A stretch of DNA of 64,000 nucleotides, from NCBI GenBank assembly GCA_977016875.1, contig CDRNST010000008.1, forward strand, positions 4,588,001 to 4,652,000, read 5' to 3'. Under the pieces are notes generated by a model that was not told the DNA's origin, searched no databases, and was given only the letters and a program-made list of their open reading frames with translations. A program made the position numbers and the translations under genes. Source of the stretch: Pavona decussata. Its lineage: Eukaryota. Shown here one piece after another: positions 1-43,837 of this stretch (position 1 is its first letter; every line of letters starts with the position of its first letter).

Positions 1-121
1 AAACCGTCTGGTCAAGAAACCGGTCAGAAAACGGTGTAAAAGATGACAGGTTTCCCCCATCCCGCTCTTTGATATCAAGGTTCAACTTACAAATCTGCTT
101 TTCGTTCTTTTTCGTTTTTAG

Positions 122-1318
122 CCCAACTGCGTTGCTGAAGTGGTGACGTTCGAGAAGGAGCAGAAAATTATCATTATTTCAAACAGGAAAGTTGAGAAAG
201 GAGAAGAGGTACGCAAACGTTTATTTCCCCAACTGAAATATTTTAAGCGTTTGGAGAGGACACGTCGGTGAATTTGTCTGACCATTCGACCGCAAAGCAC
301 TAGAAATTCCAGTTGGCAAGTGAACTGGAACTATTTCGGAAACTGTGGTGTAGCTCTAGAGTCCTTGCTCGATATCCCTTAAACGAAAAACCGACCAAGT
401 TGAGAGTTTTAGAAATTAAGAATGCCAAACATTTTTTTGGGTGTAGATAACGAAATATGGGCCCGTCATTCTGGGTCTTTCGGAAAGCCGGCTAACCGTT
501 ATGTTGCCCCAAATTTCAGTTTGTGTGATGTTCTACGCGCAGTCCTTGTTGGTCCAATGGATGGTGCCGCCAAAAGCGCGAAGGCTGCACCAAAAGCCAG
601 TGTAATTATTTTTAATTCGGGTGTTCTCCGGTATTTTGTAAATAATCGAGTTCAGCTGTGTTCTTTTCGTGAGCCTGTTTATGGGCCACTTTTCTTCCCA
701 GGAAGCTAGCGCACTTGTCTTAAGCACCTCGCGAATGCACGGAAGGCCGCCTCCACCAGTCTGCAAAGCATAGCACGTTCACGCGCGAGTATTGTTCGCG
801 GAGTTTGCGCACTCGTCAACTAACTTGATGAAAACAGCCTCTACTGACCTAAGAATTCAGACGACACTTTCATTGATATTTCTTTTGGAATTGCGAATAT
901 ACACCGACCTCCCGGGCTACTGAAGTGTAGCCACCTGCACGTGTCAGTACACGCGTGTGCAGCCGAATGCCTTTACACGCGCGAGATCTCGTCGAGTTCT
1001 CTCCTACTCTGCAGACTGGCGCGTCCCGACTAAACTCGCTCAGAAGTGTTCGGCAGTAGGATTGCAAACGCCCCCTTTCCCATGTTTACATCTACGCTGA
1101 AAAGAGTGATATCAGCACAAATTTTCTTTTATGATCATCTGGGTTAGTGCGGTCCTGAGAAGGATTGTTTGAGGACCTTTGAGGTGACATTGACTGACAT
1201 TCATGTTACAACTCTTTTCTTGCAGCTCACTTACGACTACAAGTTTGACTTCGAAGATGAAGAAAACAAGATTCCATGTTTGTGCGGCGCACTTAACTGC
1301 CGAAAATGGATGAATTAA
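122..1318 (+). CDS. KMT2C: 3' end (last two coding exons: 122-208, 1226-1318) of a KMT2C/KMT2D (MLL3/4, trr-type) H3K4 methyltransferase; SET C-terminus and post-SET
   Basis: The exons splice in phase 0 with canonical AG/GT to give [29 protein letters not shown]|[30 protein letters not shown]. This closely matches the recalled KMT2C/D C-terminus ([10 protein letters not shown]...YDYKFDFED...IPCHCGA.NCRKWMN). The rest of the gene lies upstream of the window. KMT2C versus KMT2D orthology cannot be resolved from these two exons. Confidence 0.93.
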
Positions 1319-1731
1319 GACCAGGAAATACGCACAGTTTTTCACTGCAATTTATTTAATCGTTATTTATTTAACGCGAATGCTCTACACTTTTTGGCCG
1401 GTACAAATCCAGAATTTTCTTACACATAAACACAGCAAGAAATATTATATTATCTGATGTATAATTAATCATGTTTTAGTTCGCTTTTTTTCTCCAGTTC
1501 GTAGAGGTCAATTTGTCATGTCAGACATTTCACATAGGAATAAGTACATTTCATTCGGAAATATTGAATTCGCTAGGTTTTTGTTTCTTCTTTGCTTATT
1601 GTAAAGTGTCATGATAGTCTCGAAATATGTCCAGAGTTTTTAAAAATTTTACACGCACCAAATGCGTGTCTCATCAAATGTAGTGTATATAATGCTTTAT
1701 TGGCTGAAGTGAGGTTTTATTGAATACGGAG

Positions 1732-1741
1732 AATAAATAAA
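1732..1741 (+). terminator. Likely polyadenylation signal of the KMT2C/D gene (overlapping AATAAA x2)
   Basis: AATAAATAAA about 415 nt after the TAA stop, at the end of an AT-rich 3' UTR-like stretch. Confidence 0.55.
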
Positions 1742-4700
1742 ATATGCATATTGTGGTTACAATTTTCAGTGAGTGCAGTTAGAGAATTTCTTTGTGCTTA
1801 ACCTGTTTGATGAATCTTCTCTTGTGGCTCCAGTAGTATTATAAACGAAGGAAGCAATTAATCCTTCTTTGTTATAAATGTCTTGAACTTGGCGTCAGGA
1901 AAGCGTGCTATTTACGTTAATTAGAAACGAGCTTTTATTAGATCCTCTAGGTAGCTCAGTAAGCGGGAGCTCGTTATGGTTTGGCGGGGAAACTAGTTTC
2001 AGAAACAATGTGTTGTTTTCAAAACACGAACATGTTAATTCCAAAGTCCGTGAACTGTATTCTGGACTTAACTGAATTTCGTAGGAAAAAATCTACCTGT
2101 TAAGTTTTTAGCGGGTGGGTTTGTAAATTACGCGCCCCCTCTTTTAACATATAAACGCTTATTAGTGAATGAGCGAGTGGGAGGGGTAGTACTCTCCGCG
2201 CATTTGATCCGTATTTTTGAATCGCACGACTCAGAGTTGACGAATTGATCTGGTTGTTCTCCTGCCGCGCGCGGACGGTCCCTCGTAACTCGGTTATCCT
2301 GATTTGAAATGGTCCGAGTATTTTAAGTTCATTCATATCGGTGTTAGGAGGCTTCATGCTAATGATTTTGTTGGTGGCGAAAAGCGAACGAAACCAGCTC
2401 TTCGCGCAACAAAGGATTGGACGTGTGATAAGAACTGCTAAAAACTGGTGTTATTTGGCGGCTTATGTAAAGCAGGGACAAGCGCGGCACTCGAAAAACA
2501 TGTCTTGGTCGTGTGCAGGTGTTAGTGCAAAAATGATCGAGCGATATTTGGCGTTCCATAATCTGGGCGCCATATTGACGAAAGGAGATGTTGTGGAAGA
2601 CAAGTTGTCGCCACACATTTATCTCGATTAGTTTTGACAAAACAAATGACAAAGGTGGCAGAAATGTTGTCTTGGCAATTGTTGTTTTGTTGTAAGTAAT
2701 TAATTAGGCAGTTCTACTTCTTGGACTGTGAACATAACAACATCGAGGACATCTTCGTTTGCATTTGTCAGGGAACAAATTTGCTGTGTTCTCACGGCAG
2801 GGTATCAACACAGTCGGACAACGGACGCCACGTTGGAAGTACTGCATTTTTATTTTGTTCCGCTCAACTGTCCGCTCAAGAGAAGTGTTAATGAGCAAGC
2901 GGATCGACACTTGATGTGTCAAAGGTGTGCGCCTATGGGAGGTTTGACTGTGTTTTATATCGGCCATACATTTTTATTACATGTATCCGTGTTCGAACTT
3001 GTGTTGATACAGGATGCCATCTGCTAGAAACATCTCGTATGAATACCGATTTAAGTTTCCTTTGCTACAGCGAGCTGGAAAATAGTTTTTATGCCCGCGC
3101 GGTTTTTGCTTCTTTTTTAAACTTTAACAAAACGTGTTTACGGTTGAACTCCATCAAATTTTTATGTTCCTCAGTGGACGCCTTTGTGTGATCTAGTGTA
3201 GTCACCCGCAGCTAGATTGAAACACAAATATCACAATTCACTTCTTATCACAATGTCGAAATGAAAATGAAAATTATCCTTTTCGACAAAAAGGCGTGTG
3301 TCTAAGCAGCAAAATTTGTTGAAAGATTTCCCCGACCACTACTTGAGTATCGACCTCGCTAGTACAGTACCGGCGGCAGGCTTTCTCTTGCGTGATTGTC
3401 CTCGAAAACACGCGAAATACTATTTCCTATTCAACCTGCGAACATCTGGCTTTACTCTTCTTTTTCGTTCAACCGAAGATTTTAACCGCGGGCGATGCTA
3501 CTTTGTATTCTTTCAGTTTTGGCACACTCTCCGTACCTACTTAAAATGTCAATACTAATAAAAGTAATATAATTGTTTTTGTTGTTGCACTTGTCCAATT
3601 GCTAAGAGCAAAATGTTTGGAGCGGTTTTATTTGGCGAATTTGGAGTTTTGCATGAGATCAGGTTTTTTTTTCTTTTTTTTTTTGTGGCTCAGGGAGACT
3701 GATATTTTCCGAGTTTGTGCGAAACAATAACAATATGCTTTTATTTTAACAAAAACTCAACAACTTACAGGTTCATATTTTGAAATTAGATGCAATAAAT
3801 TTTCACAAAAATGCTTCTACAGGTACACAATTTTTTCTGAATCTTAAAAAAAGATAATAATAAAAGCATTTAATTCCCTGCAGCATGTTGAACTTTTTCT
3901 CAAGGCTGCTGTTGACAGTGTTGTGTTTCATTTTTTATCCGAAGTGACAGCGAGTTAGTTTTTTTTGAGGTGCCACTTCTCTTTTCAATACCCCTTAGGA
4001 AATGCAAGACAATCACATGCTGGAAATTCAATGCTTTTATTTGCGGTTGGTAAACTCGTAGGAAGAAAACTACCTTTGAAAACGTGACATGTACCTGCCT
4101 CTAGCCTAACACCTAGGACCGATCCAGGTCGCGCTCTTTCACTTTAGGACAGCGAGTGGTCCTGTACTTACTTTGTACATAAGCCGGAAGGAGGGGGGTA
4201 GGGAACGTTTGCGCAACATTTTACTCTTATTAGTCGTGGTCACGCTACACACTTTCAGCTGGGCGAAAATCATTTACCTTGGGCAAACTCACTCGTGTAA
4301 ATAAAAGGCCATACCGGTGAAGTCAACATCTGGGTTTCTCTTATACAAATTTAAATTTCACATCCGCGTAATGGAAGTTTTGGCAAGTAAATAGACTCGC
4401 TAACAGCACTATGCTCGGAGGCAAAGCCCATCAAAGAGAAGTTTTCTTCTTATATAAGTTTCCTGCTACTTCTCAAGTGCGAGTAGTATTCTTTTAAATA
4501 TTCTCTTTTTTTGTCTTGGAAACAACACCATCTGTCCGAACGCGTGGTATGGGTTCTTTGATCATTTTTGTGCGACTGTTTTACTTTAGACAACACGCGC
4601 TGCTTGCAAAATTAGTTTTGCAGAGTGATTATGATCCCTCCTCTGTCATCAACGCATTTGCCGACAAGGGCCTATTCGATAAGCTACCTTGGGAGGCTGT

Positions 4701-5412
4701 CAAGGGAAAAATTCCCTGGGGTAATTTTGGTCACAAGATTCGGTTTCCTTAGGGAAACTGTCAACAAGTCAAGTTTTCCTGTAGGCCAAAAGTGTGTGGT
4801 GTGACCACGGCCATTGACTCTAAAATATTGACAAAAGGATATTTTTTGCCCTCGGAAACGAAAACGGAATGAAAGAAAATGAGCAGGCCCTTTAACATCG
4901 CGCGAAAACTTTCTTTTAAAAAGGATGCGGTTTTGTAGTTGTTGTTGTTTCTTTGAAACGAAAGCATTTCAAGAAACTGAGAAGAATGAGGCGCTTAGTT
5001 GATTAGAATTTGCATTGTTGAATGCAAAAAGCGTGCTATGCATGGACTGCATGCCGAGGGCCCCTTTGGGTTTTCCTGAAAGGACAAAGCTATCTGAAAA
5101 GCGGAAACATTCACTTCCGGTGTACGTGGTGAAAAGAAAACAATACTGGAGATGAGAAGACAGCTTGTCGTTCTCTCTGACGACTGTATACGACTTGGTG
5201 CGAGTCAAACACGTACATCGCCGCTTTTTATAAAACGCTTTTCGAGATATTGAAAGATACTTGTCGGTTAGCCGCTCGACAAAAACCCGTACACGCAAAA
5301 AAAAAAAAAAAAAAATAAAATAGATATATGACTCCAAAGGAAATTGAGAAGTCTTTATTGCGCAAAAAAGGTATCCCCCCGCCCGCTGCCAGGTGCGGCA
5401 AGTTGATCCTCC

Positions 5413-5505
5413 CAGACAAATTCTTAGTATCCCATCGGGCGCGACGAAAACATGGCCGATTGCAGACATACTCGAATTCCAGACAGACAAACAAGGCGGC
5501 CAGAC
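5413..5505 (+). promoter_or_regulatory. Cluster of Smad-binding elements (CAGAC x5) with GC-rich elements, upstream of the MH1-PHD gene
   Basis: CAGAC at 5413, 5463, 5480, 5484 and 5501, with GGCGCG near 5438 and GGCGGC at 5495. Motif match only. Confidence 0.45.
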
Positions 5506-5900
5506 GTTAGTATTCGGAAGCATCATTATACCTCCCAGAAAAGCCATTATACGAGACAAATTTGACTACTTGAGTCTCAGTTCAGCGCGAATAAGGTTTG
5601 CGTGACTTGCTGTTTCACGGGGTCGCTGCCGTATTTATATTTTATACAATTTCGTTTAAAAGAGACCGCTACTGATAACACGCGGGTCACTTCTATTTGT
5701 GTTTCGCACCGTACAAAAGTAAATGAATTCAGTTCGAATTTATGCCTTGATATAAATAGAACAAGCATTTCAGAAAGGAGATTGAAAGGTCGTAATACCG
5801 CTTGAAAAATTTGGTTTGTCAAGGAGGTATTTACATTTAACTGAATTTTAAATTTAAATTTAGTTTTTTTTTCTCGGCAATTTTCAAAGCAATCCCAGCG

Positions 5901-5935
<35 letters not shown>

Positions 5936-6632
5936 GGAAGGCGTGGGTGGCGGATACATGCATGCTTTGAATTTGACAAGCTACTTGTATTCTTTTACTG
6001 CCCGACAGTTTAAAACCATCCGCAGTGAAAAATGTAATTTATTCGTAGTTTTTTTTTTAATAAACGGGACACATGTCAATCTCATTTAAGCGTTATTTTG
6101 AACTTATACGTGATAAATCTTACTTGAAAAGGTTGTAGAAATGTTAAAAAGTGGGTGTTCAACACAAACGTTTTTGACAGAATACACACTCCGGAACGTT
6201 CTCGACATTCGTGAACGTGAAAACGTGTCCCAACTCACCCTAACAGATCTGAGTTTCACTAAAGCAAATACCCGGGAATGTTTTATTTGAACAAACGTCG
6301 CTGGAAAGGTGTCAACTTCGTTAATGTCCTTAGCAAAAATTTTCGTGTCCTTTGCCTCGAAATTAACAACACACCAAAATACATTGTTTACCATTACCCG
6401 TCAATCAAAGTGATTGACAAGAACGCGTGTAAGAAATAATTGCTATCACCTTTTGAGGGATGTGATTGGACGAGAGGCTTGCTATGACATGACCGTACTG
6501 ATTCAATCTGAACCCTGTACTGCGCATATGGAGTTTGTTTGGGAAGGAACGTTTATGGGTGTTTGGCGGATTGATTCTTCTTGAAATTTTAAACTATCTA
6601 TGATGAAATGAGGACCATAGAAGGGGTCGGGA

Positions 6633-7080
6633 ATGGAAAAAAGCTTAGTGCAATCGGCTTCCCCCAAACGAGGACCGAGCTCCGCCGATGCGAACCTAAG
6701 CATCGTGTTGAATCTCATGTGTCATACAACTTGCCATCGCCAAGGAGGCGAAACTGAGAAATTCGCAAAGAGAGCCATCGAATCGCTGGTGAAAAAACTG
6801 AGAAAGAAGTCTGAAGAGCTAGACTCTTTGATCACCGCGGTCACAAGTAAAGGATCCAAGTCATCAAAATGTGTCACGATTCAGAGAACTTTAGATGGCA
6901 GACTTCAAGTTTGCGAGCGCAAGGGCTTTCCACATGTGATTTACGCTCGCTTGTGGCGATGGCCAGACATTCAAAAAATGGAGATGAAACATTTGGACTT
7001 TTGCCGATACGGCTATGATCTTAAGTACGAGAGTGTTTGTGTCAATCCGTACCATTATGAAAGAATTCGCAGTCCGGCAG
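6633..7080 (+). CDS. Exon 1: Smad4/Medea-type MH1 domain, copy 1
   Basis: Translation includes [22 protein letters not shown]...[35 protein letters not shown]...FC...[11 protein letters not shown]. The Co-Smad signature, beta-hairpin R/Q/K residues and Zn ligands (C,C,C,H) are intact. The ATG is in good context (ggaATGG), there is an in-frame TAG at 6618, and the donor is CAG|GTAAG (phase 1). Confidence 0.93.
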
Positions 7081-10000
7081 GTAAGAATTTATTTTTTCTT
7101 GTTGGAGTTAGTGTGTTGGGTCAATTGTGTGATGTCATGTAGCTAGCCAAAGGAACCAAATGAACGCACGCATTTCTTGTACGTGCTCTCACAAGGTACG
7201 TGATGACAAAATTTACACCAGCGCTATGGTATGTGACAATACTTCATATTGTGGCCGGATTAATCCAACTAACTCGGGTGAATTGGCCTTTGAAGCCCGT
7301 TTTTGTTTTTAATTTTTTTTATTTTTTACATGTCTATGTCACGGGGGAAGTTACTACAGGATTTATAACTTCTCAATCGGGGGTAATATTTTTGTAATTC
7401 GCTCAGGGACATTATTTCCGATCTAAATCATTCGAGCGTTTTGTCGTTGTATTATCGTCGTAACCTTTGGAAAAGCCTTGTGACAAGCGATCTGTTCGTG
7501 CGATATTTTGCGTTAAGACAGGTCGTGCTCGTTCGATTACAAGTACAGTATTTGCCTCACGAATTCATTATCGATAAAGATGTCAAAGAGCGAAATGCTA
7601 ATTTCCTCCTTGGGAGTGGGCAAGGCAGTGTTTTCATCTATTGCTTCGCCATTGTTTGGATAACGAGCGAGTCACTGTTTTGCATTTTTAATTTCTGCTT
7701 GAACGTCGCTTCGTTTTTTGGCCGAATTTTTTGCGCGATTCTTCTTATTGCGCTCTCCAGACTGTGTTTCAGACGTGTTGAGGTCCGAATCACGTCAAAT
7801 GACTGGCGATCGTTTCGTGTGGGGCGAGCGAATTATTTTGTCTGGGTTTTGTTTAAGTATTATTGTTGGTTAGTGCTCATTGTCTGGCTGGAGCGTTTCT
7901 TGTCTGAAAACGTCTGAAATGTCGTCTGCTTTCGCTCTAATTTATTTTGGGACCTGAATTTATTTTCGTCCGAGGCCAGAGCACGCGCGCGCGCTACTTG
8001 GAACCAAGTTTTGGGCTAAAAATCGCTGTTAGAACAGTGAATGTGGGTCGGGTAAAAGGTAAACACAAAACCTAATTAGTATTCAAAAGGGCCTTATTTG
8101 AATATATTTTTATTTCAGTCGGCTTCACTGTCTAGACGATAGCGTGAATTTTACCGCCACTACACGATCAGTTTAGTTATAGATTGCATTCACGCCATTT
8201 TTCCGAGCCAAGCGCACGCTATCCGTGTTCTTCACGGAACAGGTTTTCTTGTGTGGAATGTCTTTGAAATTTTGAATGTCATTTCTGACAACGTGTATTG
8301 TTCGTAATTGTATATCAATTCGAGGGTATTGCATTTAATCTCGAATTCTGTTCTTTCGATCGCCGAAATAACTACCCGAACTTTGATAAAAATCGTTTTT
8401 TAAACGACAGTAGCTTTAGAATAAGTCACCTGTACAGTTTTTCTTAACAGACCCCTATTAATATTTCTCATCTCCTGACAAACAAAACCACAAAAGCCAC
8501 GTAGATGCATTTCAATTGCTTCCTCTTGTCTTGTCACGTAATTAAAATTTCGTGTTCAGCCACGCAGTGCAAAACGTTTCTATTCTCTTCTGGTGGTTTG
8601 CTTTATTTTATTGATCGAATGTTGCTTTTTAAATCGTATTTTTTATGGTTGAAGTTCTCAACTGCTAACAAAGATTACACGGCGGCTTCTTTTGTTTAGG
8701 TCTTTTGCATTTTAAACCCCAGGGGATTGGAGCCACAAGACAAGACATACTAAACATACAAGTTTTCAATTTTTGTTTTAATTTTCGCGTTTTTTACATT
8801 TTTTTGCGATAGATACACATCAGCTTATAAGTCCCTTGAGATGACTTGTAATTTAAAGTGACTTTCACTATAAAGGAACACATTTTAATATTGTCAATGG
8901 TCTTGCTGAACATTCATCTGAGCCAAAAATGTTATTTGTATGTGCTTTAAAGCGTTTGCTTGTGGTTAAGGCAAATTAGCGTTATTAAATTATTACCATA
9001 TCCCTTAAAGGGAATTTTCAGAGGGAATAACAAAGTTTAAATATCTTATGTGAGAGAGAAAAAACTAGCTGAAATCCAGAGTAGCCAAAAATAAAATAAA
9101 GGAAGAAAATTCAACTTTAATAGTGGTGGACACGACAGTGTTTTTGTCTAAGCTTTGCCATTGTTTGGATAATGAACCAGCACAATTAACTTAAACAAAT
9201 TAAGAAATATGTGTTTTTGCACTCCTTTCTCCAATTGCTATTGGTAAATGTGGTGACTGTTGTGTACTTCACTGACTTTCTTGTTCATTTTTAAAAGGAA
9301 CATGGAAATGGTTTGCACATATTTCATTTCCATGGAGGATCATTTGTTGATTTAATTTAATTTTTGTTTCTGTGAAGATTGTCCTCACTAACAGGGAAAT
9401 TTTGGCTGGGGACAGAGATCAGTCCTTGATTTTTGGTGATAATTTCTTTATTTGGATCTATTTTATTTGTTTTCACTCCATCTGACCTGAGCAATGCTTT
9501 TCAATCGACAATGTGTATCAAAGGAAATGATATACTGTTATGATAATTTACAGACAGACAAGTGACCTGTAATGTCATTTTGATCGCTTGAGGGTGCACA
9601 ACGCTATTTCTGTTTTGCAGGTAGTTTCCTGAGATAAATCATAGTTTTGTCTTGTCAGAAATGTTATACAAACTTCTTTATTGTTCTATTTTATAAGATG
9701 ATTTTTTTCCAAGAAGTCTGTTTTATATGACAATTTTTTTCATGTGTGTGCGTACTATTAAAGAGTTGTTTAAGTGATATCGTCCAGGCTACATTATATA
9801 CTCATGGTTTTTTACATAAGCTTAATCCTTTGACATGGTTAAATACTAAACGTTGTTATCCATTTTGTTAGGCCGATATCTCTGCAATGCTTAGTAACTA
9901 TTTCACTTCCTTGACATGTTTTGCTTTTTGCTGAAATTTGTATCACAACAAACATTGCAAGGAAATATATTGCAATTTACACCGTATGTTGTAATAACTG

Positions 10001-13000
10001 GATTAAGTTTTATATTTTAGGTAATATTTTTGTCACTTTTACAAGGGTCTTACGGAAAAAAAGTGAAAGGGGCACATATGCTGTCAAATATTTTGCTGCA
10101 CTTTGGCGTCAGTGAATGTGATGTTACTACTATATGTGAAGTCATCCTCTGTATCTGTCAGACTTTTTTTCAAATTTTTTCATTATTTGATCGTGCCAGC
10201 AGCATCTGGCAGCAGTCCGAAAAAATGTGTTGAGTAATTCTCTGAAGACCATTTAGTTCTGTACATCAGGATATAATTTGGAATGGCTTCAAGTAATCAG
10301 TGTCTCTAATTCAATTAATAATAGTAACAAAGACAAAGTCCAATTCGGTCTGTAATCATATAATTGATTAACAAAATAGGACGACAGCATAGCGGGAGTC
10401 TGATTACAGACTGACTAAGCAGACATAAAGTCCTGTTACCAATTAAAGGGGAAGTATCATGAAAATTTGATGTAATTTCAAAACCCAAAAATGTTTGTCT
10501 GACAACAGAAACAAAAAAAAAAAATAGTTGTCTAGGTTTGTTATAAAATTAATTATAACCCCAGTGCAAGAAAACTGTCGATTAGTGCCTCTGGCCAGGG
10601 ACAGAGTAGGTCGCAATGGATTGAAACTTGAAAAATGTTAGGCTGATGTTTTTCAAGTTCTCGTATTTTGTCTCCAAAATGTGTTAGAACAAATCACGAG
10701 TCGTTCCTGTCAAGAATTTAGTTGACTTTTCTCCTCTCACTGTTCTAGAATTATTTTGTAGTAAAGTGAAGGTCTTATTTCACCATTTTTAACAAAAGAG
10801 GTCAATTAAACCCCATGATACTTCCCCTTTAATCGTGACCATTTCAAATTTTGAGAACGAACGGCTGTGACAAATAAACAGCATTTTTTATTGAGATGTT
10901 TCAGAGAATGTAAAAACAACTGCTTTATTTACAAATGCATTGGTAAAAGGACCCTGGTCAAGTGCAGCTATCCTATTACAGCATGCGTAAATGTCTACTG
11001 TCCAATTAGGTAGGCGTGAGGTGCATACACTGTCCTATTGATGCTCAAATCATGGCTGCTGATAGCCAATCAGATTCAAGAATTTTGTTATAGTTACGAT
11101 TAAAGCTGTTATCAGTGGAAAGGAAGGTAAAGTGATCTCAACCATGTTTTTTTTTGCTTTTACTTTAGGGGAATCTTATCATGTTTTCCAACAGTATTGT
11201 CTTTTCTTGGATTATAAAATGTTCTTGTGATAGGTTAGGTGGTAATCGTGATAGCTTCATCTGTTGTGTTTCAGCGCATAATATAACCAGTTCAGAATAC
11301 AAAGGTTTATAGATCAGGGCATTTGACGTTATTGATGGAGTTTCAATTTAATTGCCCGCTTCTGCTGTGTTTAGTTGAAGTCTGTGACCGCATGAATATC
11401 AGACGCATCAGCTCTTTGCTTTTGTTTATGGGCAGAGTGGATATTGATGCCTTCTGGTAATCTGATTATAAGTTCTGTTTTATTTGGAATCAATGTATTG
11501 TCTGTAAATGTATCATGACTTGTACATCAGTTGGAAAAACACTAGGAACTCTCAATGTCTCCTTTATAATTTCTGCAGGCTAAAAACATTTTGTTATCAA
11601 ACTGTCGCCCTCTGAACTCATTAGTCTCTTCTGAAACTAAGCAGAACAGGAATAATTTTTAAGAAAACCTTAAAATGGAAAAGTCTGGGTGAATTCTTGA
11701 ATACGAAACTTATTTATTTTTAATTATTCATGTAGATGTTATTAATTGTGTAATTTAGTGATTGTAATGATAAATTTTTTATGTAGTGATTTTTTAATCA
11801 TATCCTGTATTATCTTTGAAAATCTTCGTGGGAAAGATAAAGTATGTAAACTATGTATGTCTGTCTGTCTGTGTGATGTCAAAGAATACACTAGTCTCAT
11901 AAATCAAAGGTAGTTGATATGTTTCAGGATGAAGGGTTAGGTCTAAAGGTGCGGTGCTTCCCTTCCAAGTAGTTCAAGTTCTGATTATATTTTGCTTTGT
12001 CTCTGTGTTATGTTTTTTGTGGTTTTGTGACAGTATATAGTTGTAAAAATGGATGAGTAACCAGGATTATGCATATTAAAAGCTAAATGATGTTGTCTTA
12101 ATGTTTAAAAATTCTTAAAGAAACAAGCTTTCGGCTACCAGACTGCAGCCTTCAATGACTGATAAAAAGCTGTCGCAAATGTATGAATATGTAAACATGT
12201 CTGAGTAAGTGCAAAAACATAGCAGGATAAACATTACGAGTAGCTATTTTAAAAGAATCAAGTATTGCCTAGGTAACGGCATGGAATTGCTTCATTAGTC
12301 CTGGCATCATGCCTATTTTTTCGCACTCGGTGGTCACCTTTATCAATCACACTATTGTCTTGCATTTTCAAAGTCAATTGAGTGATTAATTATTGTTAGT
12401 CTGATTAGAAATGTTGGTCCTCTGTGGCAGCTCTTAACTTATTAGTATTAATAATTATAGTTGGTTAAGGCAAAAAATGTCTGAAGTTACATTTGTTTGT
12501 TCTTGTGGAAATTTGTCAACATCTGATAGAAATGCTTAAAATTTTTGAAAAAAATTTGCAGTATCCAGACATGTTTTTTATTTTTTTCATAGATTCATTT
12601 TTCGTTCTGGCAGACTGTCACATACATTTCATTTGATTTTATTATTATTTTTTTATTTATACTCTCCACACTTACTGTTACATAAGCGCAAAATACAAAA
12701 GTTGGAGGTATTAAAAACATAGGCTAGCATGCAGCTCAAAAATACAATTCAAATAGGGGAGAGGAGAGTAGAGGGGCACCTCTAGTAAAACTAATATTGT
12801 CCCCCTTTAAAGGAAGTAAATTGACAAGAAAAGTAACAAAGTAGAATAGAAAAAACAAGAAAGATATAGCGGAAGGAAAACAAAAAAAAAAACAAAGAGA
12901 AATGAAAATAATTGGTGTAAAGTATCATTGATAATGAGCAAGGAATGTATCATCAATATTGAGCAAAGGTAATATTTAAAGAGTGGTTTTCTAAACATTC

Positions 13001-16000
13001 ATTTAGTAGGTTTGTCCTTAACCGTCTGAGAAATGTTATTCAAAAAACATTTTCCTGTTACAGTTGGACAAAATCTCCTTAGATTTGTTATGAAAAGACT
13101 GTCACATTCTGTTGAAAAAGATGCAAACAAACCCATGGAAGAATTTTAAAATGTAACTAGAGTTTCTAGTGCTGTTTGCATTTCTCATTTTTGGTTAGTA
13201 ACACTTTTCCTGTTCACTTGGAGATTCATAGACACTGTATTAAGTGTTTAGGTGAAATAAAAAGAGCCTTATTATAACCTATCAGGGAAGTGGCTAGGAT
13301 GGCAAAGAAATCATGAGTTAACCTTAAGACCTGCTCAATGGTATGGGGAGGGGGGGGGTCAAATTTCATATACATTTAATCATTTAAAGGTGATCAATTC
13401 CTTTATTCTCATGAGAATACAGTGTAGTTATATTGTAACGAGAAATTACACTTAACAGGTTTAACATGTAATGGGGCCTCAACCTCAACCTGGGTGTCAT
13501 CCCAGGTCATGTGGTTTATGACTGCCATTGAAGAATATATTTTTTCTCTCTATACAGCTGCAACTCTCTCAGTCAAAACATCATCACCAAATTGTGACAA
13601 ATGTGCCTTATCTGTGTTGAAAGAAAGTCCTCCCCAACCAACGACAACATATGAACAGCCTAAATATCTAGAGGCAGGGCCTAGCAACTCTTTGCCAGGA
13701 GCCAGCAACATTCCTTGCTCGGCAGATCCCTGCCCAATCATAGTGAGGAATTTACTTTGGCATGCTGTCCTCCGACATCAGGGTGCTGATGCCGAGAGCT
13801 TTAGTCGAAGGGCTATTGAATCCTTGGTGAAGAAACTCAAGAAAAAATTTTATGAGCTGGACTCGTTAATTGTGGCTATCACCTCAAAGGGACGGCAACC
13901 CTCAAAATGTGTCACTGTTCAAAGGACAATGGATGGGAGATTACAAGTCGGGGATAAGAAGGACTTTCCTCATGTTATTTATGCACGGCTTTGGAGGTGG
14001 CCGGATGTGCACAAGATGGAAATGCGACATAAAGAGTTTTGTCAGAATGGTTATGATACAAAGCATGAAAAAGTCTGTGTTAACCCATACCATTATGAAA
14101 GAGTTCAACCACCAGGTATGTTAAACTTATATTAAATTTGTCTCGGGTGGTGGCCAGCTGTCTTGTGAGAGCAGTCCTGAAAAAGGTTGGAGTTATCAAA
14201 GGAATTCCAAAATACTTTTCATTTTTCCTTATTTGTGATTTCATTCCTTTATATTACTTTTACAGTTATCTGTCAGTAGACTGTTAGTACAGATTTGTGG
14301 GGAAAGTGTTCTTCAGTTAAACCGAAAGTTGAATTTTAAGTTTTGTCGCAACAATGATAGTACATGTAGAATTGGATATTAAGCAAATCACCTGGCTTGT
14401 TAATTCTGTTTCAAAGTTTTCGTCTTGTCACACTGTTAAAAAGAACACTCGGGCTTTTTTTAAATTTACAAGAACTTCATTCCAGTTCACTTACGCACTT
14501 ATGGAAATAAAAAAAAATTATGTATGCAATTTTCAATTTTGAGCAAGTTCATCTTAACCGTTTATGAGCATCCTTACTTTGCACACAATTCATGCCAGGA
14601 ATTAAAATGTAAACAGATATAACTCTTCAGGTGATTGTTTAAATAGTTTTTAAGTAAGATAAGTAAGAGAGTATCTTGGTAGTAACTTTGGAGTTGAGTG
14701 TGTGAAATTTGAATTGTTAGAACTGTTTTTCAACTCACTTCCCATCAAATTTTGCCTATTAACACCTTGGTTGTATTGGAGTTGCAAGACAAGTGTTGAA
14801 CTAGAAAGGATGGCTCAGTTTATGTAACTCTATAGCTGGACTGACTCTACACAAGTATTGTAACACAAAAAGTTTGTCTCCCAAGCAATCCATTTGCACT
14901 ATTTTTTAAACCATTAGCTAATAAGTCATTTGTTTTTCAAATTTGAATTCATGATGTTTTCTTTCTGTTTAATAGATTGGTTTAGGGCTTCCTTGTATGG
15001 GAATGCACACAAGTCGCATGGTATGTCAAATTTGCCTTGATAAATGAAAATTTTAACTTATTCCTGTATATATATAGCCATAATATTAATAATTTTAAAC
15101 CAATGAGGTCACGACATGGAAGAGTGCTTCTGATTTGGTAATAAATCTCATGTTGTACATTGCTTTAAGGTACACGTTTGTAGTCTATAAGGGAGGTTAA
15201 TGACACTATGTTCAAAAGATGATGTTAGGTGGCAAAAGTGAATGGTAACCTTGAGGCTTTGCAAGACAGATATTAGGTGGCAAAAGTGAATGGTAACCTT
15301 GAGGCTTTGCAAGACAGATGTTAGGTGGCATGAATGGAAACCTTGAGGCTTTTTTAGGTGGCAAAAGTGAATGGTAACCTTGAGACTTTGCAAGAGAGTA
15401 AGGCTAGTGCTTTCCTCTGCGAGCAATTGACTTCATGGCCTTTTTAAACACACGACTAAGACCTGGAGTTTTGTGACTGTGAGCCAGCTGAGAGCCTGAT
15501 AATTTTTTTAGCTTTAAAGTATTGCTGTAATAAACTAGTTCTTTCCTGAGACTTTCAGTGTAGCAAGAAGGAGAATCATATCTTACTAAGTTAATTTTTC
15601 AAATGGCCTTAGACAGTTCTGGGTTCAAAGTAATTGGGAATCGAAGTGTGTTTGACAAGAAAAAAGGACTTCCAAGACAATACCATTCAAACAGTGAGAC
15701 TACAAGCTTAAGACCTGTGAAATTACACCAAAATCTGGCAAGACTGGCATATGTTTTATTATTATTAGACCATACGCCAGGTGTTTCTCCATATGACATA
15801 TCAAGAATGAATAAAAAGTGGACTTTTCACCACAGAAAATTCCTTGAATTTTTTTATTTGACATTTTGTGTTTTTAAACTTAAATGTGTTTTGCTTTTGA
15901 TTTTGTGTGACATATTTTGCTAATTAATATTTTTTCCTGTACTTAAAACTCAAGCAGAAGCTGAAAACAGCCGTAAAAGTGATGAGGTAAGTTATTTAAT

Positions 16001-19000
16001 ATGAAAATCAGTTTTAGTTTTAATTAATTTATAGCTGACAGGAAATGAAAGGAACAGACAAAATAGTATATTTGTTCCATTTTCATCACTGAATAAGGTT
16101 GGATTTTTGTTTGTTAGCTACATTTTACCTCAGTTTCAGGTTTACAGTGATTTCAGTGATTTGCTGTATTCAGTGGTCACATGCTTTAGACTTTAACCTC
16201 CTTATTTTTCAAGGGTGTTTATATTACATTTGGTAAAATTGTCAAAGTAGAATTCTTTAGCGGGCCTTGAAGTGAAATTTATCACATCTGTAAATTAAAA
16301 TTCTTTACACTTGTCTATTCCAGCATTAGTGTTTTTTCCTTATTCAAGTTCATTCAATCCCTACAGAGGTCAGTTGGCATTTAGTTTGAGTCGACATGCT
16401 AACAACTTAAGGCTCTTCCATTGACAGTTTAGATTTACAAAGTTCCTTAATTTATTCCTAAGAATATAACAAATTTGGGTCTAAAAATATGATGATTAAA
16501 TTCTTGGCCTGTCATCTCTGAGACAAAATTACTCCTCACTTAATCCAAACAGATGTGCTCGTTTAGATTGGGATCCTGTTTTTCTAATCTTTTCAGTAGT
16601 ATTTGATTGTTAGTTTCCCCTTCCTGTAGGCTACTAGTTGGCCGGTTACCCCTCCAGTTAAATAGTCAACTATACATTATACATGAACCTAGTTTAATGG
16701 CCCTAGCTCCCACGAGTCTCCTGTGGCTCAGTAGTAGAGCATCCAAACTAGTAAATATTGGAAGGTCTTAGGTTCGACTCTTGATAGGAGCACTCTGATT
16801 TTTTCAGAGTATGCCAGTGTGTCTCACTGAATAATACATCGTTCTCTTATACACCATCTGTTCTCATGTTGTTTCATCAGGACTCCAATGGCGGCTCGCT
16901 GTCAAATGAAAATGACGTTGGTGAGAAAAACAGTTGCTACTGTACACACAGCAGTTCTTCTCAAGGAAACAGGAAGAGACAAGAACCTCAAGATGCAAGT
17001 TATTTCAACTCCAGGTTAAAACGGAAGCCTGATTTTGAGGGAGACAGGTATACTTTCAGTAGATTCTTAGGATGGGTAAATGCTCTTGCTCAATAATACT
17101 TTTCCTCTTGATCATTGATACATTCACTTATAAATACATGTACAGTACTCCTATTAAAACCTCACCACAGCGTGCAACTACGATGGTGGTATTTTTCTCC
17201 CAGTTGCTGATAACCTGGACTTCTTTTTGGATCTGAGTTTGGATAGGGGTGTGCTGCCCAGGCTCTGAAACCCTGACCCTATTTATGACAAAAATGTATA
17301 CAGTCGCACCTCTATTAAGCGGCCACCTATTAAGCAGCCACTCTACATTAAGCGGCCACTTTCCAAAGTCCCGAATTATTCATTTGTCAGTAAAGTGCTG
17401 TATTCGATACCTCTATTTAACGGCCAACCTCTATTAAGCGGCCAGTTTTCAAAGTCCCCAGGGTGGCCGCTTAATAGAGGTCCGACTGTACTTTCCCTTT
17501 GTGAACTGTTTAGAGGATAGATTTTATTATTCCCTGTTTAAACAATTACAAAGGTATATGCACTGCAATGTACCTGTATATAGCAAATGCTAATCGTAGG
17601 TTGACTTAAAAAGAAAAAGAGAAAAGTAGTAGTAGAAAAATATACGAATATTAAGTAACTAGCCAATAATGATTCAGTTGGAATAAAACAAAACAAAACA
17701 AAACAAACATGCTGTTTAAAACAGCACTATATTAATGGGGTCCTTTCAAAATATTAAAATTCGGCTTGAATGTGAGGTCTAGAGGACACAAACAACAGGA
17801 ATGAATAAACATGATTATTTAGTTTCCTTTGTTTGTGTCCTCTAAGCCTTATTGTAAAGTTGAATTTTAATATATGGAAAGGAGCCTTCATGAATTTGGA
17901 TGCTGGATTAAAAAAATATCAGGGAAAATTGTCAAGATACAATTGTACGGAAAATATTTCCTATGTACCATCTCTACAGACCTGTCTATGACATCTTGAA
18001 GCCAAAAACTGATACCTTATATTGATAACCATGGGCGGCACATTTCCACACAGGTTATGTATGGGCGTACCCCCCACCCTCCTTCCAGACTTTTTACCTT
18101 GGGTTAAAGAGTTTCTTTTTGTACTGACAGGGCAATGTCAGCTGCTGCATCATCAGTGAGTTATTCTAGCGACAGCGATGAAGATATTGACATTGAAACA
18201 GACTCACCCAAGAGAGTGAAGGTGAATTCATACAGGACTTAGTTTATTGAGATTTTATTCTGATGATAAGCCAATAGAACTTTGATTCAATTTGACCTTA
18301 GGTTGAAACATTCCTTTTTCTACAAAAAAAAAAAAATTAAGTCGCACTATGAGCCTAAGTGACCCACATGGCCAGAGCTTAACTTAGCTTCTGTAGCATG
18401 AAGCAACTACATTTAGCAGTCTGGATGGGATGCTACCTAGTCCATCACAGGGTTATCCCTAGCAGTATGTTGCCGGTAACCATTTATACACCTGGGTGAA
18501 GAGAGACAATGTGGAGCAAAGTTTCTTGTCTAAGGAAACAATACAGCAATTAAGAGTCCAATCTAGCCTTGAACCACTGGCCTTCAGATCTTCCAACCGT
18601 CCGATTAAACAAAAGTCTGTCATGCTAATCACTATACCACTGTGCGTCCTTTCTTTCCTAAGCCATGCTGTATTCTTAGATAGCTATGAAAGTTGTCAGA
18701 GCTTGTGCCTGTTGGTATCTTTGTATGAAGTGCTTACAGTGTACACAATTTCACTTTGTTTATTCCCATGTTCAGCACTGCGATGCTTACATTCATTTGA
18801 CACTTAATTGCTTGTTTTTATAATAAATTAGTTAATTTAATGTTATGCACAATTCGCTGTTGTCTAATTAGCATGTTATTAAACACTTTGTGGTTTAGCT
18901 TTCTCCAAGTGAAACATTGAGTGAGAAAACTGGTCCTAAAACGGATGAGAGGTTAAGCAATTCCCACAGCAATTCAAGAAGGTAAGTTGACTTTAAACTT

Positions 19001-22000
19001 AATTTTGGATATAAACAAATCAGATTTTTTTAAATTTTCTTTTGGTCCAGATCATGGTTATGAATCTGAGACAAAATAAAAAATCAGTCACCTCCTGGTT
19101 TGAAAATTATCTAAAACAAAATAATTTAAACAACAACTTAGATATGATCATGAATTTAAACTGGCTGAAGTTCGGTGGTAAAGGTGAGATTCTGATCTTG
19201 TTTTTTTGGGAATAAATTAGTAACTTCACCTGAATTACAGGTGTAGTTTGTACAGCAAGAGAAACAGGAAACAGATGAAGTAACAGTAATGTTTCCATCA
19301 GTTGTTGCCATGCAATAAGTTCAGGTTCCCAACAAAAATCAAGTTCATTTTCTGTACAAAAATCACATCTCACAACAAATTTTAAGTTTCACAGAATATA
19401 TTAAGACTAGCGGTTCCTAACAGAAGTGAAGTGCTGCAGGCAGATGCTCTTAGCAGTGAAGAGTACTGTAGCATTTGTTTGGCTAAACAGACACTTTTAC
19501 TTGTACAGAATACAATACATTTCCAAAGCATAGATATCAAGACTTAGATGTGTGTATATCCCTTCCTGCAATCATCGTGATAAGCTTTATCTAATCTCGG
19601 TTTTACTAACTATCTCCGTAAATGTTAGTACAGCTGCATGCGGTAACTTTAAAATAACAATATTTTAAAGAATGCCCTAAAAATTACAGTTATAATAAAT
19701 AATCAAAAATCTTGTAACACATATATACAGTGATTGATTCAAATAAAGGTAGTTTATAGTTCCAGTTGAAGTGGTTGCCATCTCTGTGAACAAGAAAATC
19801 ACTGAATCTGCTAAATCGTACATAGATCGGTCATGAAGCCAATGATATTAAACACCATCTGCATTATCTCCTTAAACACTGTACTTATTCAGTTGCTCCA
19901 CTTTACAAAATCCATAATATTATGAATTGATAAGAGAAATATCCTCTAAAACAAAAGATGGCAAAACAAGAATAAAATGTAACAAAGCATACTTCCTCAG
20001 TTTATTTGTCTTTGTTGGTTTTGGACCACATATTAATTTGAAACAATTTGGTGCATTAGCCACTGACAACATTTGTTTAGTTTGGTTTACTTGTAACCAC
20101 AAAACGGTGTGCTGACAACCCAGTTATGTGCTCAGCTATAGTTCAATTGTCTACCTCCTGGCTAACTAATAAACACAATGTGCATTAAATAAGAGAAGAT
20201 CATGTTTAAAATAAATCTTTTTAGAAGAACTTGGAGAATGAGTGCCTTTAATTTTGTAATTTATAGTGATCAAGATTGTTCATAAATTGCTGGGTGTATC
20301 TGAGATATTGTCTTGGCTCTGTGTGAATTCTTTTTTTTCTTGTTTTTGTTTGTTTGTTTCAGAGTACGCTGTGCTTTGTGCAATTGTGTGAACAACAGTC
20401 AGTTGGGGCAAGGTGATCTGATATGTTTTGGAAGAATATCTGGCTTCCCGAGACACTCAACAAGTCCACAGCAATTTCAACAGTTTCCGTCAGGTCACCG
20501 AAATACACATTACCCTGCTGTTAGTAGTTCACTTTCTTCCTATGGCAGGGGAAGCCCCCATGATGACGAATACCAAGACCACAGTCCTTATTCCTTGAAA
20601 TACAGGGCCAGTCAAGGGGAAGGCCCAGCCATCAGGTACTCAGATTTACAGGCTTTGTTAACTTGTTTGTAGCTATGTTCATAATTTTGAGCCTTTCCTG
20701 ACTAAAACTGAACAGTAGTAATTTTTTGTAATACGTCATTTGCGAAGAGTTTGCAGTTTACCATAACAGGCATGTGGCATTCGATTTGTTTTCAAGAGTA
20801 CCACTGTCTTGTAGGTTTTGTATGCATGATATTCTGGTTCAAAATTGTTTGAAAGATGTTATAAAGAACTTGTAGATTCAGAGGTGTTTGTAGTGACAAC
20901 ATAATCACTGCAGCAGCTGGTTCATACACTGCACCAGCAAATCAGCTGATTGGTCTCATCAGTAGTTTAAAATTTTAATATTAATTTTAATTATTTTAAT
21001 ATTTTAATTGATTTTTATTTTATTTTAATCAGTATTTTAATATTTTATTTAAAAATAAAGTTGTCATTATTATTACTATCAATTAAAATTTTCATGTCCT
21101 GCTTGTATTAACACACAGATCACTAACAGTAGATGTAATAAGATATGACAACTCCAATGTGCTTTAGTGTGATCCAGGTGTTCAAAATGTAAAGCTAACC
21201 ATAGTATTAACCAGGGCCCCATTGTTCAAAGCTTAACCTAGGATTTGTGTGAACTTTGGTTACTGTAAAAGTTGTTTAACAATTTAGTTAAGAGAGTTTT
21301 CCATACAATGTCTGCAGTTCAGTTTTGAATTAGACTGTCCTGATAACCTTAAAATGAGTGAGATGAAAAGCTTGGTTAACTGTTAATCGGCTTTGACAAA
21401 CAATTAGGGTCAGAGATAATGAACGATGCATATAAGAAGTGCCTAATTTATTTATTGAAACTTCAGGCCAAGGAGCCCTGATGGAAAATCTAATGTGGTG
21501 AACAGTTCCAGTAACAACAGGCTCACACCTGCTCCTCAAGAAGACATTTCCAATGTTGGCTTCAGAGAGGAGCCTGAGCTGGTTGATCTGTGTGACATGT
21601 CTGGTCACATATGGGTCCATGAGAGATGTGCGGCATGGACACTGGCTTCCATTGCTACCAAGTCTGCAGTGGAATTTACTGTTGAGTTAACAAATCAGAT
21701 TCTCTCAAAGGTACAACACTCATAATGCCAAGTGATTGAGATAGGATTATGTAATGTTCAAAAAACGAGCAGAGTGTTTAAAAAACGTTTTAGACCCAAT
21801 AAAACACGTGCTACCAGTTTTTTGAATGGCTTCAAAAACATTCCTGGAAAAGCGTGTGTCAAGAGAGTTCATAACAATTATGCTTTTGTGAACTAAAATT
21901 AGCATACGAGAAAAACATTTAACACTGCATACTAATAAGGAGGAGGTTTTATCGGGTTTTAAAACCACTGCACGTGATGTTTTATCGACCATTTCATAGG

Positions 22001-32996: not shown

Positions 32997-43462
<10,466 letters not shown>

Positions 43463-43837
43463 CTTGATTTCACAATATACTACACCTTCCCCCTCTCCGC
43501 TCCGTAGTGAGGCGTCTGAAGCTAACTGAAAACAAAGCACGAGTGGGGTAGAGTGGGTAGGGGGTAGGGTATATGTTTTTCCAACAAAAACCTAAGAACA
43601 TCCAAAACAATTTTTTTTTTAAGGAAGTGTTAAGGACGTATCCTAGGCCAAGGTTTTGTAAGAGGTTTTCCTGTAGAGTGAAAAAGCCTCGAATGACACC
43701 GTCCACTACCTTTTAAGGCCGAGGCTTTTGAAAGACCCACCCCCACCCGTATCCGTCCCCCAAACGAACGAAGAGGCCGAGGACCCAGTCTTTTTCGCTG
43801 CTGCAGGTTGCAGATTTATATCTCTTCCATTTTGAAA
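43463..43837. promoter_or_regulatory. Bidirectional promoter region shared by PHYHD1 and SOD2
   Basis: The divergent ATGs are separated by only 375 bp. The region is locally CpG-retaining, with G-rich and C-rich tracts. Confidence 0.75.

Follow-up and report, generated by a model that had tools for sequence, protein, structure and literature searches.

The first intron of a coral gene that encodes two MH1 domains and a set of PHD fingers contains a 95-nt non-coding block, at positions 7834-7928 of the window (the whole 64-kb stretch of DNA analysed), in which the word GTCTG, the reverse complement of the Smad word CAGAC, occurs five times in the same orientation. Alignments, blastn searches and column counts delimit the block as a conserved non-coding element (CNE) that is single-copy, located at an orthologous position and conserved beyond neutral expectation. 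It is this deep conservation, not the word count, that is decisive, and the sequence comparisons therefore lend good support to a functional element composed of Smad-type words. With a little better than even confidence, we read the block as part of a composite cis-regulatory module with Smad words of the CAGA-box type, at which MH1 proteins, together with other proteins, would dock and so set the transcription of the gene.

The CAGAC/GTCTG cluster and its setting

A first-pass annotation of this DNA had reported seven CAGAC/GTCTG words within about 170 bp. An exact-match search and the sequence itself confirm seven words in 171 bp (7758-7928), with CAGAC on the + strand at 7758 and 7770 and GTCTG on the + strand at 7840, 7882, 7902, 7912 and 7924, and the palindrome GTCTAGAC that had been listed with them is present at 8130-8137. 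The description of the region as non-repetitive holds: it contains no repeat detected by Tandem Repeats Finder, and no other part of the window matches the 1-kb region. The window also has no N runs, and nothing in it resembled human DNA. The region is CpG-rich, as had been claimed, with observed/expected ratios of 1.39 in the cluster and 1.46 over 7001-8400 versus 0.53 for the whole window, and this richness belongs to the whole 5′ domain, positions 1-9000, not to the cluster alone. This CpG-undepleted domain (observed/expected about 1-1.5), which contains the promoter and exon 1, is presumably unmethylated in the germ line; past 9000, the gene body is CpG-depleted (observed/expected 0.1-0.5). 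Placement of the cluster in intron 1 is likewise borne out, as ortholog mRNA contigs (L026, L027 and L030) join 7080 directly to 13555.

At Markov-1 rates, 0.19-0.25 words are expected per 171 bp, in agreement with the earlier estimate of well under one. A Poisson scan at these rates, a model than which real DNA is clumpier, gives a probability of about 1e-5 for at least seven words anywhere in 64 kb, and 3e-4 at the inflated observed rate. The count alone is nevertheless notable and not decisive. Within the 64-kb window, 34 of the 512 pentamer pairs reach at least seven occurrences in some 171-bp window and, when ranked by own-rate tail, CAGAC/GTCTG is 16th of 512. As the 15 pairs ranked above it, mostly homopolymer, AT-rich or CpG-containing, cluster as strongly, the count is only suggestive.

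Conservation of the intronic block

Positions 7834-7928 are the only intronic stretch that can be aligned between the window and the lineages represented by contigs L007, L008/9 or L010/11. Identity to these in the block is 86-95%, versus 74-78% for the adjacent exon; in the blastn comparison of the window with L008, the values are 94.8% for the block and 76% for the neighbouring exon. Because the non-Acropora lineages are metagenomic contigs, the depth of this conservation is known only through the synonymous sites of exon 1, which, over 149 codons, are saturated between the deep lineages (pS 0.86-0.95); exon dN/dS is about 0.03 among near lineages. The core 26-mer matches 12 metagenome contigs and has no other copy in the window. 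In all 11 contigs that are long enough on the 5′ side, an MH1 exon ends about 0.75 kb upstream of the core; the twelfth, L015, ends short. The Acropora-type locus was reached through ORF fragment P0280. Within 10 kb, contigs L012 and L013, reached from P0014, lack the block as well as a second MH1 and an MH2 and, as all three are absent, do not provide a clean negative control.

From 7834 to 7888, 54 of 55 consecutive bases are invariant in fifteen distinct sequences plus the Acropora-type locus, the one exception being the window's own base 7876. Bases 7889-7928 vary more, between the words. Each GTCTG word in the block, read on the - strand, is CAGAC followed by A or G, and the spacings of 42, 20, 10 and 12 bp place the sites on roughly one face of the helix, a phasing that was noticed after the fact. 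Site 1 (7840-7844, reading ACCCAGACA on the - strand), site 2 (7882-7886, AGCCAGACA on the - strand), 42 bp from site 1, and site 5 (7924-7928, - strand) are invariant in all lineages. Site 3 (7902-7906, - strand) is retained in all lineages except L010, L011 and L023, in which one 10-nt unit is deleted; in L010, exactly one such unit is gone and four words remain. The base 5′ of GTCTG at site 3 varies (T; C in L007 and in the Acropora type) and the word is unchanged. Site 4 (7912-7916, - strand) is GTGTG in L008 and L009 and is retained elsewhere. Conservation in orthologous introns, proposed in the first-pass annotation as a check on the motifs, thus extends to four of the five GTCTG words in every recovered coral lineage, but the two 5′ CAGAC words and GTCTAGAC are found only in near relatives.

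Sites 1 and 2 are separated by a 37-nt spacer that has no GTCT or AGAC and is no less invariant than they are. The Smad words are therefore only part of the constraint, and additional factors are implied. Column counts show no separation of word positions from other positions in the 5′ half of the block. In the variable 3′ half, substitutions occur at 1 of 15 word positions versus 10 of 27 other positions (one-sided p=0.033), in what is a weak and post hoc test. Outside the deep block, the CAGAC words on the + strand at 7758-7774 are kept in the Acropora-type locus; the first is TAGAC in the L001 group, and both are absent from L008 and L010. The palindrome, with about 10 nt after it, is kept by a near group (the window, L001, L016/17 and the Acropora-type L032) and is absent in L007, L008 and L010. 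The alignment also reveals a second, weaker conserved block at 8064-8105, about 135 nt 3′ of the CNE, which may be part of the same module.

The host gene and an upstream partner module

The host gene is coral-specific, has 13 exons, and encodes an MH1-MH1-ePHD-PHDx3 protein without an MH2 domain. LOC114947054 of Acropora millepora is an ortholog. The full-length architecture comes from database orthologs (P0121 and Acropora members) and from the mapping of their mRNA contigs; the exons of the window were searched singly by reference. On the + strand, the coding part of exon 1 (6633-7080) encodes the first MH1 domain, of the Smad4 type (Pfam MH1 1.3e-38; PDB 5mey and 3qsv; mRNA mapping), and mapping of the ortholog mRNAs places its donor at 7080/7081. 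Intron 1 (7081-13554, + strand) separates this exon from exon 2 (13555-14115, + strand), which encodes a linker and the second MH1 domain (Pfam MH1 1.1e-34; PDB; mRNA mapping). The 5′ ends of the mapped ortholog mRNAs lie at about 6521-6547, with one reaching further upstream.

Compared with the Smad4 MH1 structures 5mey/3qsv, the two domains, MH1a and MH1b, give E values of 1e-63 and 1e-52, and they are about 72% and 60% identical, respectively, to vertebrate Smad4. Alignment to these structures shows that the hairpin Arg, Gln and Lys and the Cys/His zinc ligands of Smad4 are intact in both. It is the hairpin Arg, Gln and Lys of MH1 that make the GTCT contacts (PMC5727232). With these residues intact, the host product has a DNA-binding domain that appears suited to CAGAC/GTCTG words, as autoregulation would demand. 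No MH2 domain was found in the 962-aa ortholog or across the 64-kb window. The C-terminal half of the ortholog consists of the ePHD and three PHD fingers, and one Acropora model is annotated as KMT2C-like. Literature searches returned nothing on a tandem MH1-PHD gene or on the Acropora locus names.

An upstream module with five CAGAC words on the + strand, identified by exact match and as an island of alignability, is located at 5413-5505, 1.13-1.22 kb 5′ of the ATG, and includes three 5GC words (at 5438, 5454 and 5497). Its counterparts in other lineages have 4-9 words at -1.08 to -1.55 kb, except for L007, which has only 2, and in L008 and L010 the order of the sites is changed and their orientation is mixed. 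In each ±10 kb locus, CAGAC is at its densest in the intronic and upstream modules, again with the exception of the 2-word upstream module of L007, and outside both modules only 2 windows with at least 4 words are present in about 215 kb of coral DNA. With this second cluster about 1.1-1.5 kb 5′ of the start codon, two clusters flank the promoter and exon 1, and both are inside the CpG-undepleted 5′ domain. The upstream cluster lies 5′ of every recovered mRNA 5′ end and has words in both orientations, which speaks for recognition at the DNA level.

Proposed docking by MH1 proteins and alternative explanations

As we envisage it, 7834-7928 would be the core of a single-copy module in the 5′, presumably unmethylated portion of intron 1, with its four or five CAGA-box-type words serving as a docking array. 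MH1-domain proteins would dock on the intronic and upstream arrays, other factors would read the invariant spacer alongside them and, together, these would set transcription of the host gene. The docking proteins could be canonical Smad4/R-Smad complexes or the MH2-less double-MH1 protein that the gene itself encodes, or both of these, and MH1 docking at its own gene would provide a feedback or autoregulatory input. Binding itself, the identity of the bound protein, whether the effect is positive or negative, and a BMP/Activin link are what we infer. The observations are that a GTCT-core word is present, that its homotypic clustering is above background and that the sites are conserved in orthologous loci. 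The first-pass annotation had read the gene as a TGF-beta/BMP target, as bound by its own tandem MH1, or both; what stands of this is a conserved element of Smad-type words and intact MH1 contact residues, but the palindrome and the 5′ words are shallow. No BMP-type composite (a GGCGCC or GRCGNC box 5 bp from GTCT(G)) was found in a reading of 7800-7930, and there is no 5GC word inside 7834-7928. As there is no GC box with a GTCT at 5 bp, the BMP-target part of that reading is without specific support. A narrower version, which we hold only tentatively and think rather improbable, is that the CAGAC arrays dock the gene's own tandem-MH1/KMT2C-like-PHD product, which would then be a signal-independent chromatin reader, tethered at Smad-binding elements (SBEs), that regulates its own gene by way of an ultraconserved element in the intron and either competes with canonical Smad complexes or marks sites for them.

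The same conservation could reflect a composite enhancer or silencer that is read mainly by other transcription factors, with GTCTG being part of longer motifs and having no Smad-family role, as in TTGTCTG over Sox-like ATTGT/ACAA cores, and with a Fox-like TGTTTA in the spacer. The full invariance of the 37-nt spacer fits such an explanation, as do the TT that precedes three of the five words in the window and the rarity of CAGAC clusters in vertebrate Smad ChIP peaks, of which 1-6% have three or more and in which GC-type sites dominate (PMC5727232). It accounts less readily for site 3, at which the preceding T is replaced by C in L007 and the Acropora type with the pentamer unchanged, and for the upstream module, where CAGAC occurs in other flanks and orientations, and we regard it as unlikely. 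Constraint at the level of RNA, with the block acting in the pre-mRNA as a platform for RNA-binding proteins (in splicing or retention of intron 1) or being transcribed as a small or long non-coding RNA, would be consistent with the orientation of all five words in the direction of the host gene, with a sense strand that is strongly T+G-rich and with base-by-base invariance, which is common in RNA-level elements. Folding energies are, however, no better than those of shuffled sequences on either strand (z +0.8, -0.1, +0.4 and -1.3), the RNAalifold consensus is -5.5 kcal/mol without a compensatory pair, the best Rfam match has E=3.9, and a cluster of the same word, in both orientations and in several lineages, precedes all the mRNA 5′ ends recovered. 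An RNA-level explanation is consequently quite improbable. A structured non-coding RNA in particular (miRNA precursor, snoRNA or Rfam family) was rejected, as there is no stable structure and no family match.

That the block is an alternative or poison exon of the host gene is very improbable. The sense frame is open from 7834 to 7914, with a TGA stop at 7915-7917, and several substitutions are at third positions of this frame, but the three mRNA contigs that define intron 1 join exon 1 directly to exon 2, and a further three (L028, L029 and L031) carry the same complete 960-963-aa coding sequences. Neither a conserved AG acceptor nor a conserved GT donor is found at the edges of the block, an ATG is missing, Pfam gives no match to the ORF, and the 54 of 55 invariant bases include third positions, as compared with 76% nucleotide identity in the adjacent real exon. 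Hardly credible is a functionless product of chance and composition, in the form of T+G-rich DNA with small local duplications, or a remnant of a miniature inverted-repeat transposon. At its two ends, the 171-bp span does carry a 25-nt inverted repeat with 76% identity, the three 3′ words (sites 3-5) fall into a loose 10-12-nt periodic unit, and fifteen other pentamer pairs have equally unlikely clusters in the window. Orthologous position and near-identity have, however, been held across saturated divergence, the block occurs just once in the window and in each of the 12 metagenome matches, conservation of the inverted repeat's 5′ arm stops at near relatives, and there is no obvious target-site duplication. 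Within the reach of sequence comparison, this explanation is already refuted. As a candidate miniature inverted-repeat element, the span has only the 76% repeat, with no flanking duplication and with no dispersed copies in the window or among the 12 matches.

Docking of MH1 proteins on the block would have parallels in known systems. In CAGA-box arrays, such as that of the PAI-1 promoter and the synthetic (CAGA)9-12 reporters, there are, as in the coral block, several CAGAC words followed by A or G within about 100 bp. The - strand of site 2, AGCCAGACA, matches what we take to be the CAGA-box form of the PAI-1 promoter, a sequence reportedly described by Dennler et al. in 1998, and the coral host gene has kept the MH1 hairpin residues by which GTCT is read. 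The coral array, as a putative counterpart, differs in its host, in being intronic and in belonging to a block whose spacer is no less constrained. Feedback enhancers of inhibitory Smads include the GTCTAGAC element of the Smad7 promoter, the GC-rich BMP element of Smad6 and the intronic enhancers of Drosophila Dad. The coral gene, also of the Smad family, likewise has Smad-type sites by the promoter and in the 5′ intron, an architecture that would be expected of pathway feedback, and GTCTAGAC is present 200 bp further 3′ (8130), in near relatives only. In contrast to the inhibitory-Smad genes, however, the coral gene has two Smad4-type MH1 domains and PHD fingers without an MH2, and the block shows no BMP-type GC-box-plus-GTCT composite. 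Ultraconserved and conserved non-coding elements near developmental regulators, most of them described in vertebrates and insects, resemble the block in being sharp-edged, single-copy and more conserved than an adjacent exon, and the block also adjoins a putative chromatin or transcription regulator; it differs in its length of about 95 nt and in being dominated by a single repeated short word.

If bound by MH1 proteins, the 95 nt with five words would provide a precisely delimited, tractable Smad-type enhancer for corals, one that would be older than the divergence of lineages now saturated at synonymous sites. The gene to which it belongs is uncharacterised and would combine DNA binding of the Smad4 type with PHD fingers that read histones. 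Such an enhancer would also permit a test of self-feedback by an MH2-less double-MH1 protein and, were the gene's own product to dock there, would point to a coral-specific, undescribed branch of the TGF-beta/BMP transcriptional machinery. Even without Smads, the block is among the most constrained non-coding sequences near the gene and, for coral developmental genetics, it offers a candidate marker or regulatory element.

The parent of the host MH1 domains is Smad4, the co-Smad, to whose MH1 both MH1a and MH1b are most similar. The coral gene departs from it in having the MH1 in tandem, no MH2, and a C-terminal ePHD followed by three PHD fingers. P0011-P0019 form a group of their own in a tree of MH1 protein fragments that is unfinished and, given the intronic read-through in the ORF fragments, noisy.

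The tandem-MH1 host gene

The host gene lies at 6521-26482 on the plus strand and has 13 exons, as defined from ortholog mRNA contigs. Exon 1 (plus strand, ATG at 6633, donor at 7080/7081) encodes an MH1 domain (Pfam, 1e-38), exon 2 (13555-14115, plus strand) encodes a second (1e-34) and the exons further downstream contribute an extended PHD finger (ePHD) and PHD fingers; these domains were called by searching each exon individually, and the full-length architecture is that of database orthologs. In the ortholog mRNAs exon 1 is spliced straight to exon 2. Intron 1 therefore spans 7081-13554 and contains the Smad-type word cluster, as the first-pass annotation had proposed. Most ortholog mRNA 5′-ends map to 6521-6547, and a colinear leader of 773 nt is present in one mRNA. 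Full-length Smad4-like queries detected no MH2 exon within the 64 kb.

The protein matches to exon 1 are ORF fragments with 99, 98, 91 and 85% identity, followed by generic Smad4 sequences with at most 73%. Among the 150 matches listed from an exhaustive search of a 1.84-billion-protein library, P0121 (962 aa; two MH1 domains, an ePHD, three PHD fingers, no MH2) is the only cluster representative with two MH1 stretches and PHD fingers. Its 90% cluster includes Acropora millepora XP_029179571.1 ('uncharacterized protein LOC114947054', 958 aa) and models from A. muricata, A. palmata, A. cervicornis and A. digitifera; the orthologs in these five species are annotated just as uncharacterised, Smad4-like or, for one fragment, KMT2C-like. 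Two Smad4-type MH1 domains with an ePHD and three PHD fingers, lacking an MH2, constitute a coral-restricted architecture, and literature searches found no mention of the gene. In alignments to the Smad4 MH1 crystal structures 5mey and 3qsv, both MH1 domains of the gene retain Arg, Gln and Lys of the hairpin as well as the Cys/His zinc ligands; the residues that contact GTCT are Arg81, Gln83 and Lys88 (PMC5727232). Tandem MH1 architectures also occur outside this family, as library proteins P0151, P0166 and P0182 (627-663 aa) have two MH1 stretches at ~44% identity and no PHD, and one of them carries a C2H2 finger.

Content and composition of the word cluster

Exact-match searches and direct reading located all of the words previously claimed: CAGAC at 7758 and 7770 on the plus strand, GTCTG, read on the plus strand, at 7840, 7882, 7902, 7912 and 7924 (sites 1 to 5), and the palindrome GTCTAGAC at 8130-8137. 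The cluster was also described as non-repetitive and CpG-rich, and it has neither a tandem repeat nor a second copy within the window, with a CpG observed/expected ratio of 1.39 versus 0.53 for the whole window (1.46 for 7001-8400). As 1-9000 is undepleted throughout, the cluster sits in CpG-rich DNA and is not itself a CpG island. At ~9000, inside intron 1, the ratio falls abruptly from ~1-1.5 to the 0.1-0.5 seen beyond. This boundary looks like the transition from an unmethylated 5′-domain to a gene body that is methylated, as in the mosaic methylation typical of invertebrates. Immediately 3′ of the GTCTG sites, a short (CG)n tract at 7984-7994 is present in the near group only (L001-type, L016/17-type and Acropora-type loci) and generates the window's fourth most extreme pentamer cluster.

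A first-order Markov model predicts 0.19-0.25 words per 171 bp, in agreement with the earlier estimate of well under one. By Poisson scan, the probability of at least seven words anywhere in 64 kb is ~1e-5, or 3e-4 at the window's own inflated rate (1.95 per kb); the 125 words in the window exceed the counts in all 100 shuffles (mean 89), with the excess concentrated in 5.4-12.6 kb. Seven occurrences in some 171-bp window are attained by 34 of 512 pentamer pairs, among which CAGAC/GTCTG ranks 16th by own-rate tail, behind mostly homopolymer, AT-rich or CpG-containing pentamers. The word count alone is notable but insufficient to carry a functional claim, because words clump more in real DNA than such models allow and this one was sought after the MH1 domains had been seen. 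A third cluster, with five words in mixed orientation, is present at 10348-10501, where intron 1 is CpG-depleted, and no counterpart was found in any of the other loci compared.

Conservation of the intronic block and the upstream module

Orthologous loci were collected as contigs encoding the exon 1 ORF fragments, with more added by a later scan. They comprise near relatives (L001-L006, dS 0.22 to the window), loci from the later scan (L016-L025, dS ~0.4), an Acropora-type locus (L032-L034) and three deep lineages (L007, L008/9 and L010/11/23) with saturated synonymous sites (pS 0.86-0.95 versus the window) and protein identities of 91% and 85%. Exon 1 dN/dS is ~0.03 in near comparisons. The window's exon 1 is 86% identical in nucleotides and 98-99% in protein to Acropora-type sequences, which places the window in a stony coral outside Acropora but close to that genus. 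In L008 and L009 the second MH1 exon falls beyond the 10-kb flank because of a pogo/Tc5-like transposase insertion within intron 1 (BrkDBD, HTH_Tnp_Tc5, DDE_1; 18643-19749 and 18643-19748, respectively).

Within the 5 kb surrounding exon 1, the window and each deep lineage share a single alignable non-coding stretch, which falls on the block containing sites 1 to 5: 7809-7951 at 86% with L007, 7833-7929 at 94.8% with L008 and 7833-7921 at 88% with L010, versus 74-78% for the adjoining coding exon. The edges of the block (7834-7928) are sharp in the multiple alignment, and 7834-7888 is unchanged across 15 distinct sequences and the Acropora-type locus, save for base 7876, which is C in the window alone and G in all others, a mismatch that may be lineage-specific or may stem from sequencing or assembly. 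Sites 1, 2 and 5 are invariant in all sequences aligned, site 4 is GTGTG in L008/9, site 3 keeps its pentamer with a variable preceding base and exactly one 10-nt unit has been deleted in L010. In the variable 3′-half, substitutions occur at 1 of 15 word positions and at 10 of 27 others (one-sided p=0.033). Absence of conservation, which the first-pass annotation named as grounds for abandoning its reading, is clearly not what was found: every lineage keeps at least four GTCTG words, but the CAGAC words at 7758 and 7770 and GTCTAGAC are confined to the near group, the Acropora type included, and may be lineage-specific additions. A core 26-mer matched 12 metagenome contigs; in all 11 that reach far enough (L015 is shorter) the MH1 exon ends ~0.75 kb upstream, which identifies the block as single-copy and orthologous and not a dispersed repeat. 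Some 135 nt 3′ of the block, at 8064-8105, is a second conserved segment, weaker and AT-rich, that contains a TAATTA-like word and ATTTGAATAT and is partly retained in L007, L008 and L010.

The window's second densest cluster, designated the upstream module (5413-5505, plus strand), has five CAGAC words 1.13-1.22 kb 5′ of the ATG, together with three GC-type Smad (5GC) words. Its counterparts have six words in L001, five in L017 and L021, four in Acropora-type L032, six and nine, in mixed orientation, in L010 and L008, and two in L007. Except in L007, the block and this module are the two densest word windows in each ±10 kb locus, and only two other windows with at least four words exist across the ~215 kb of coral DNA compared. 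In near comparisons the module is an island of alignability amid unalignable DNA (88% over 66 nt between window and Acropora type, 90% over 164 nt between L008 and L010). Between deep lineages the cluster persists without alignable sequence, the pattern expected if selection maintains cluster density while individual sites turn over. As the module lies 5′ of every ortholog mRNA 5′-end seen and its words occur in both orientations, the word is taken to be read at the DNA level.

Possible functions of the block, and neighboring genes

A fortuitous cluster is ruled out by the conservation. As for a structured RNA, the block folds no better than shuffled sequences on either strand, the alignment fold (-5.5 kcal/mol) has no compensatory change and Rfam returned no match below E=3.9. 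An overlooked exon is contradicted by the absence of the block from the three ortholog mRNA contigs mapped (L026, L027, L030), of conserved splice sites and of an ATG, and by the invariance of third positions. A transposon is suggested by a 25-nt terminal inverted repeat, but the repeat is a weak one with a non-conserved 5′-arm, no target duplication accompanies it and each genome has one copy.

Sequence comparison thus indicates that the block is very probably a functional, deeply conserved non-coding element. We favor, by a small measure, the reading that it works in partnership with the upstream cluster as an MH1- or Smad-bound cis-regulatory module. There is no BMP-type GC-plus-GTCT composite in the block, and in vertebrates CAGAC clusters occur at a minority of Smad-bound regions (PMC5727232). 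Sites 1 and 2 are separated by a 37-nt spacer that is no less invariant than the sites themselves and carries no GTCT/AGAC, so other factors, or some further constraint, must act there; Fox-like and Sox-like cores were spotted in it by eye and provide only a lead. The word offsets (0, 42, 62, 72, 84) deviate from a single helical phase by no more than 1.5 bp. This regularity, noticed post hoc, would be well suited to multi-MH1 complexes that dock cooperatively, or to a two-MH1 protein with a ~90-residue linker. The host gene's own product is a putative binder of its own locus, as the autoregulatory loop first proposed would have it, although we consider this unlikely. Smad-site clusters near Smad-family genes are already known; this one has unusually tight conservation and an uncharacterised host gene.

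Elsewhere in the window, 43808-44095 and 45387-45629 (plus strand), together with 42334-42492, cover exons of a gene for iron/manganese superoxide dismutase (Pfam Sod_Fe_N) and the CpG-rich region before them, in which G/C homopolymers form a dense run. An exon at 57965-58297 (minus strand) matches enoyl-CoA hydratase/isomerase (ECH_2) and is probably the start of a minus-strand hydratase or hydrolase gene. A 191-aa ORF at 39152-39727 (plus strand), with DUF6451 as its sole match and located amid strong GC and AT skew, is probably a mobile element fragment.
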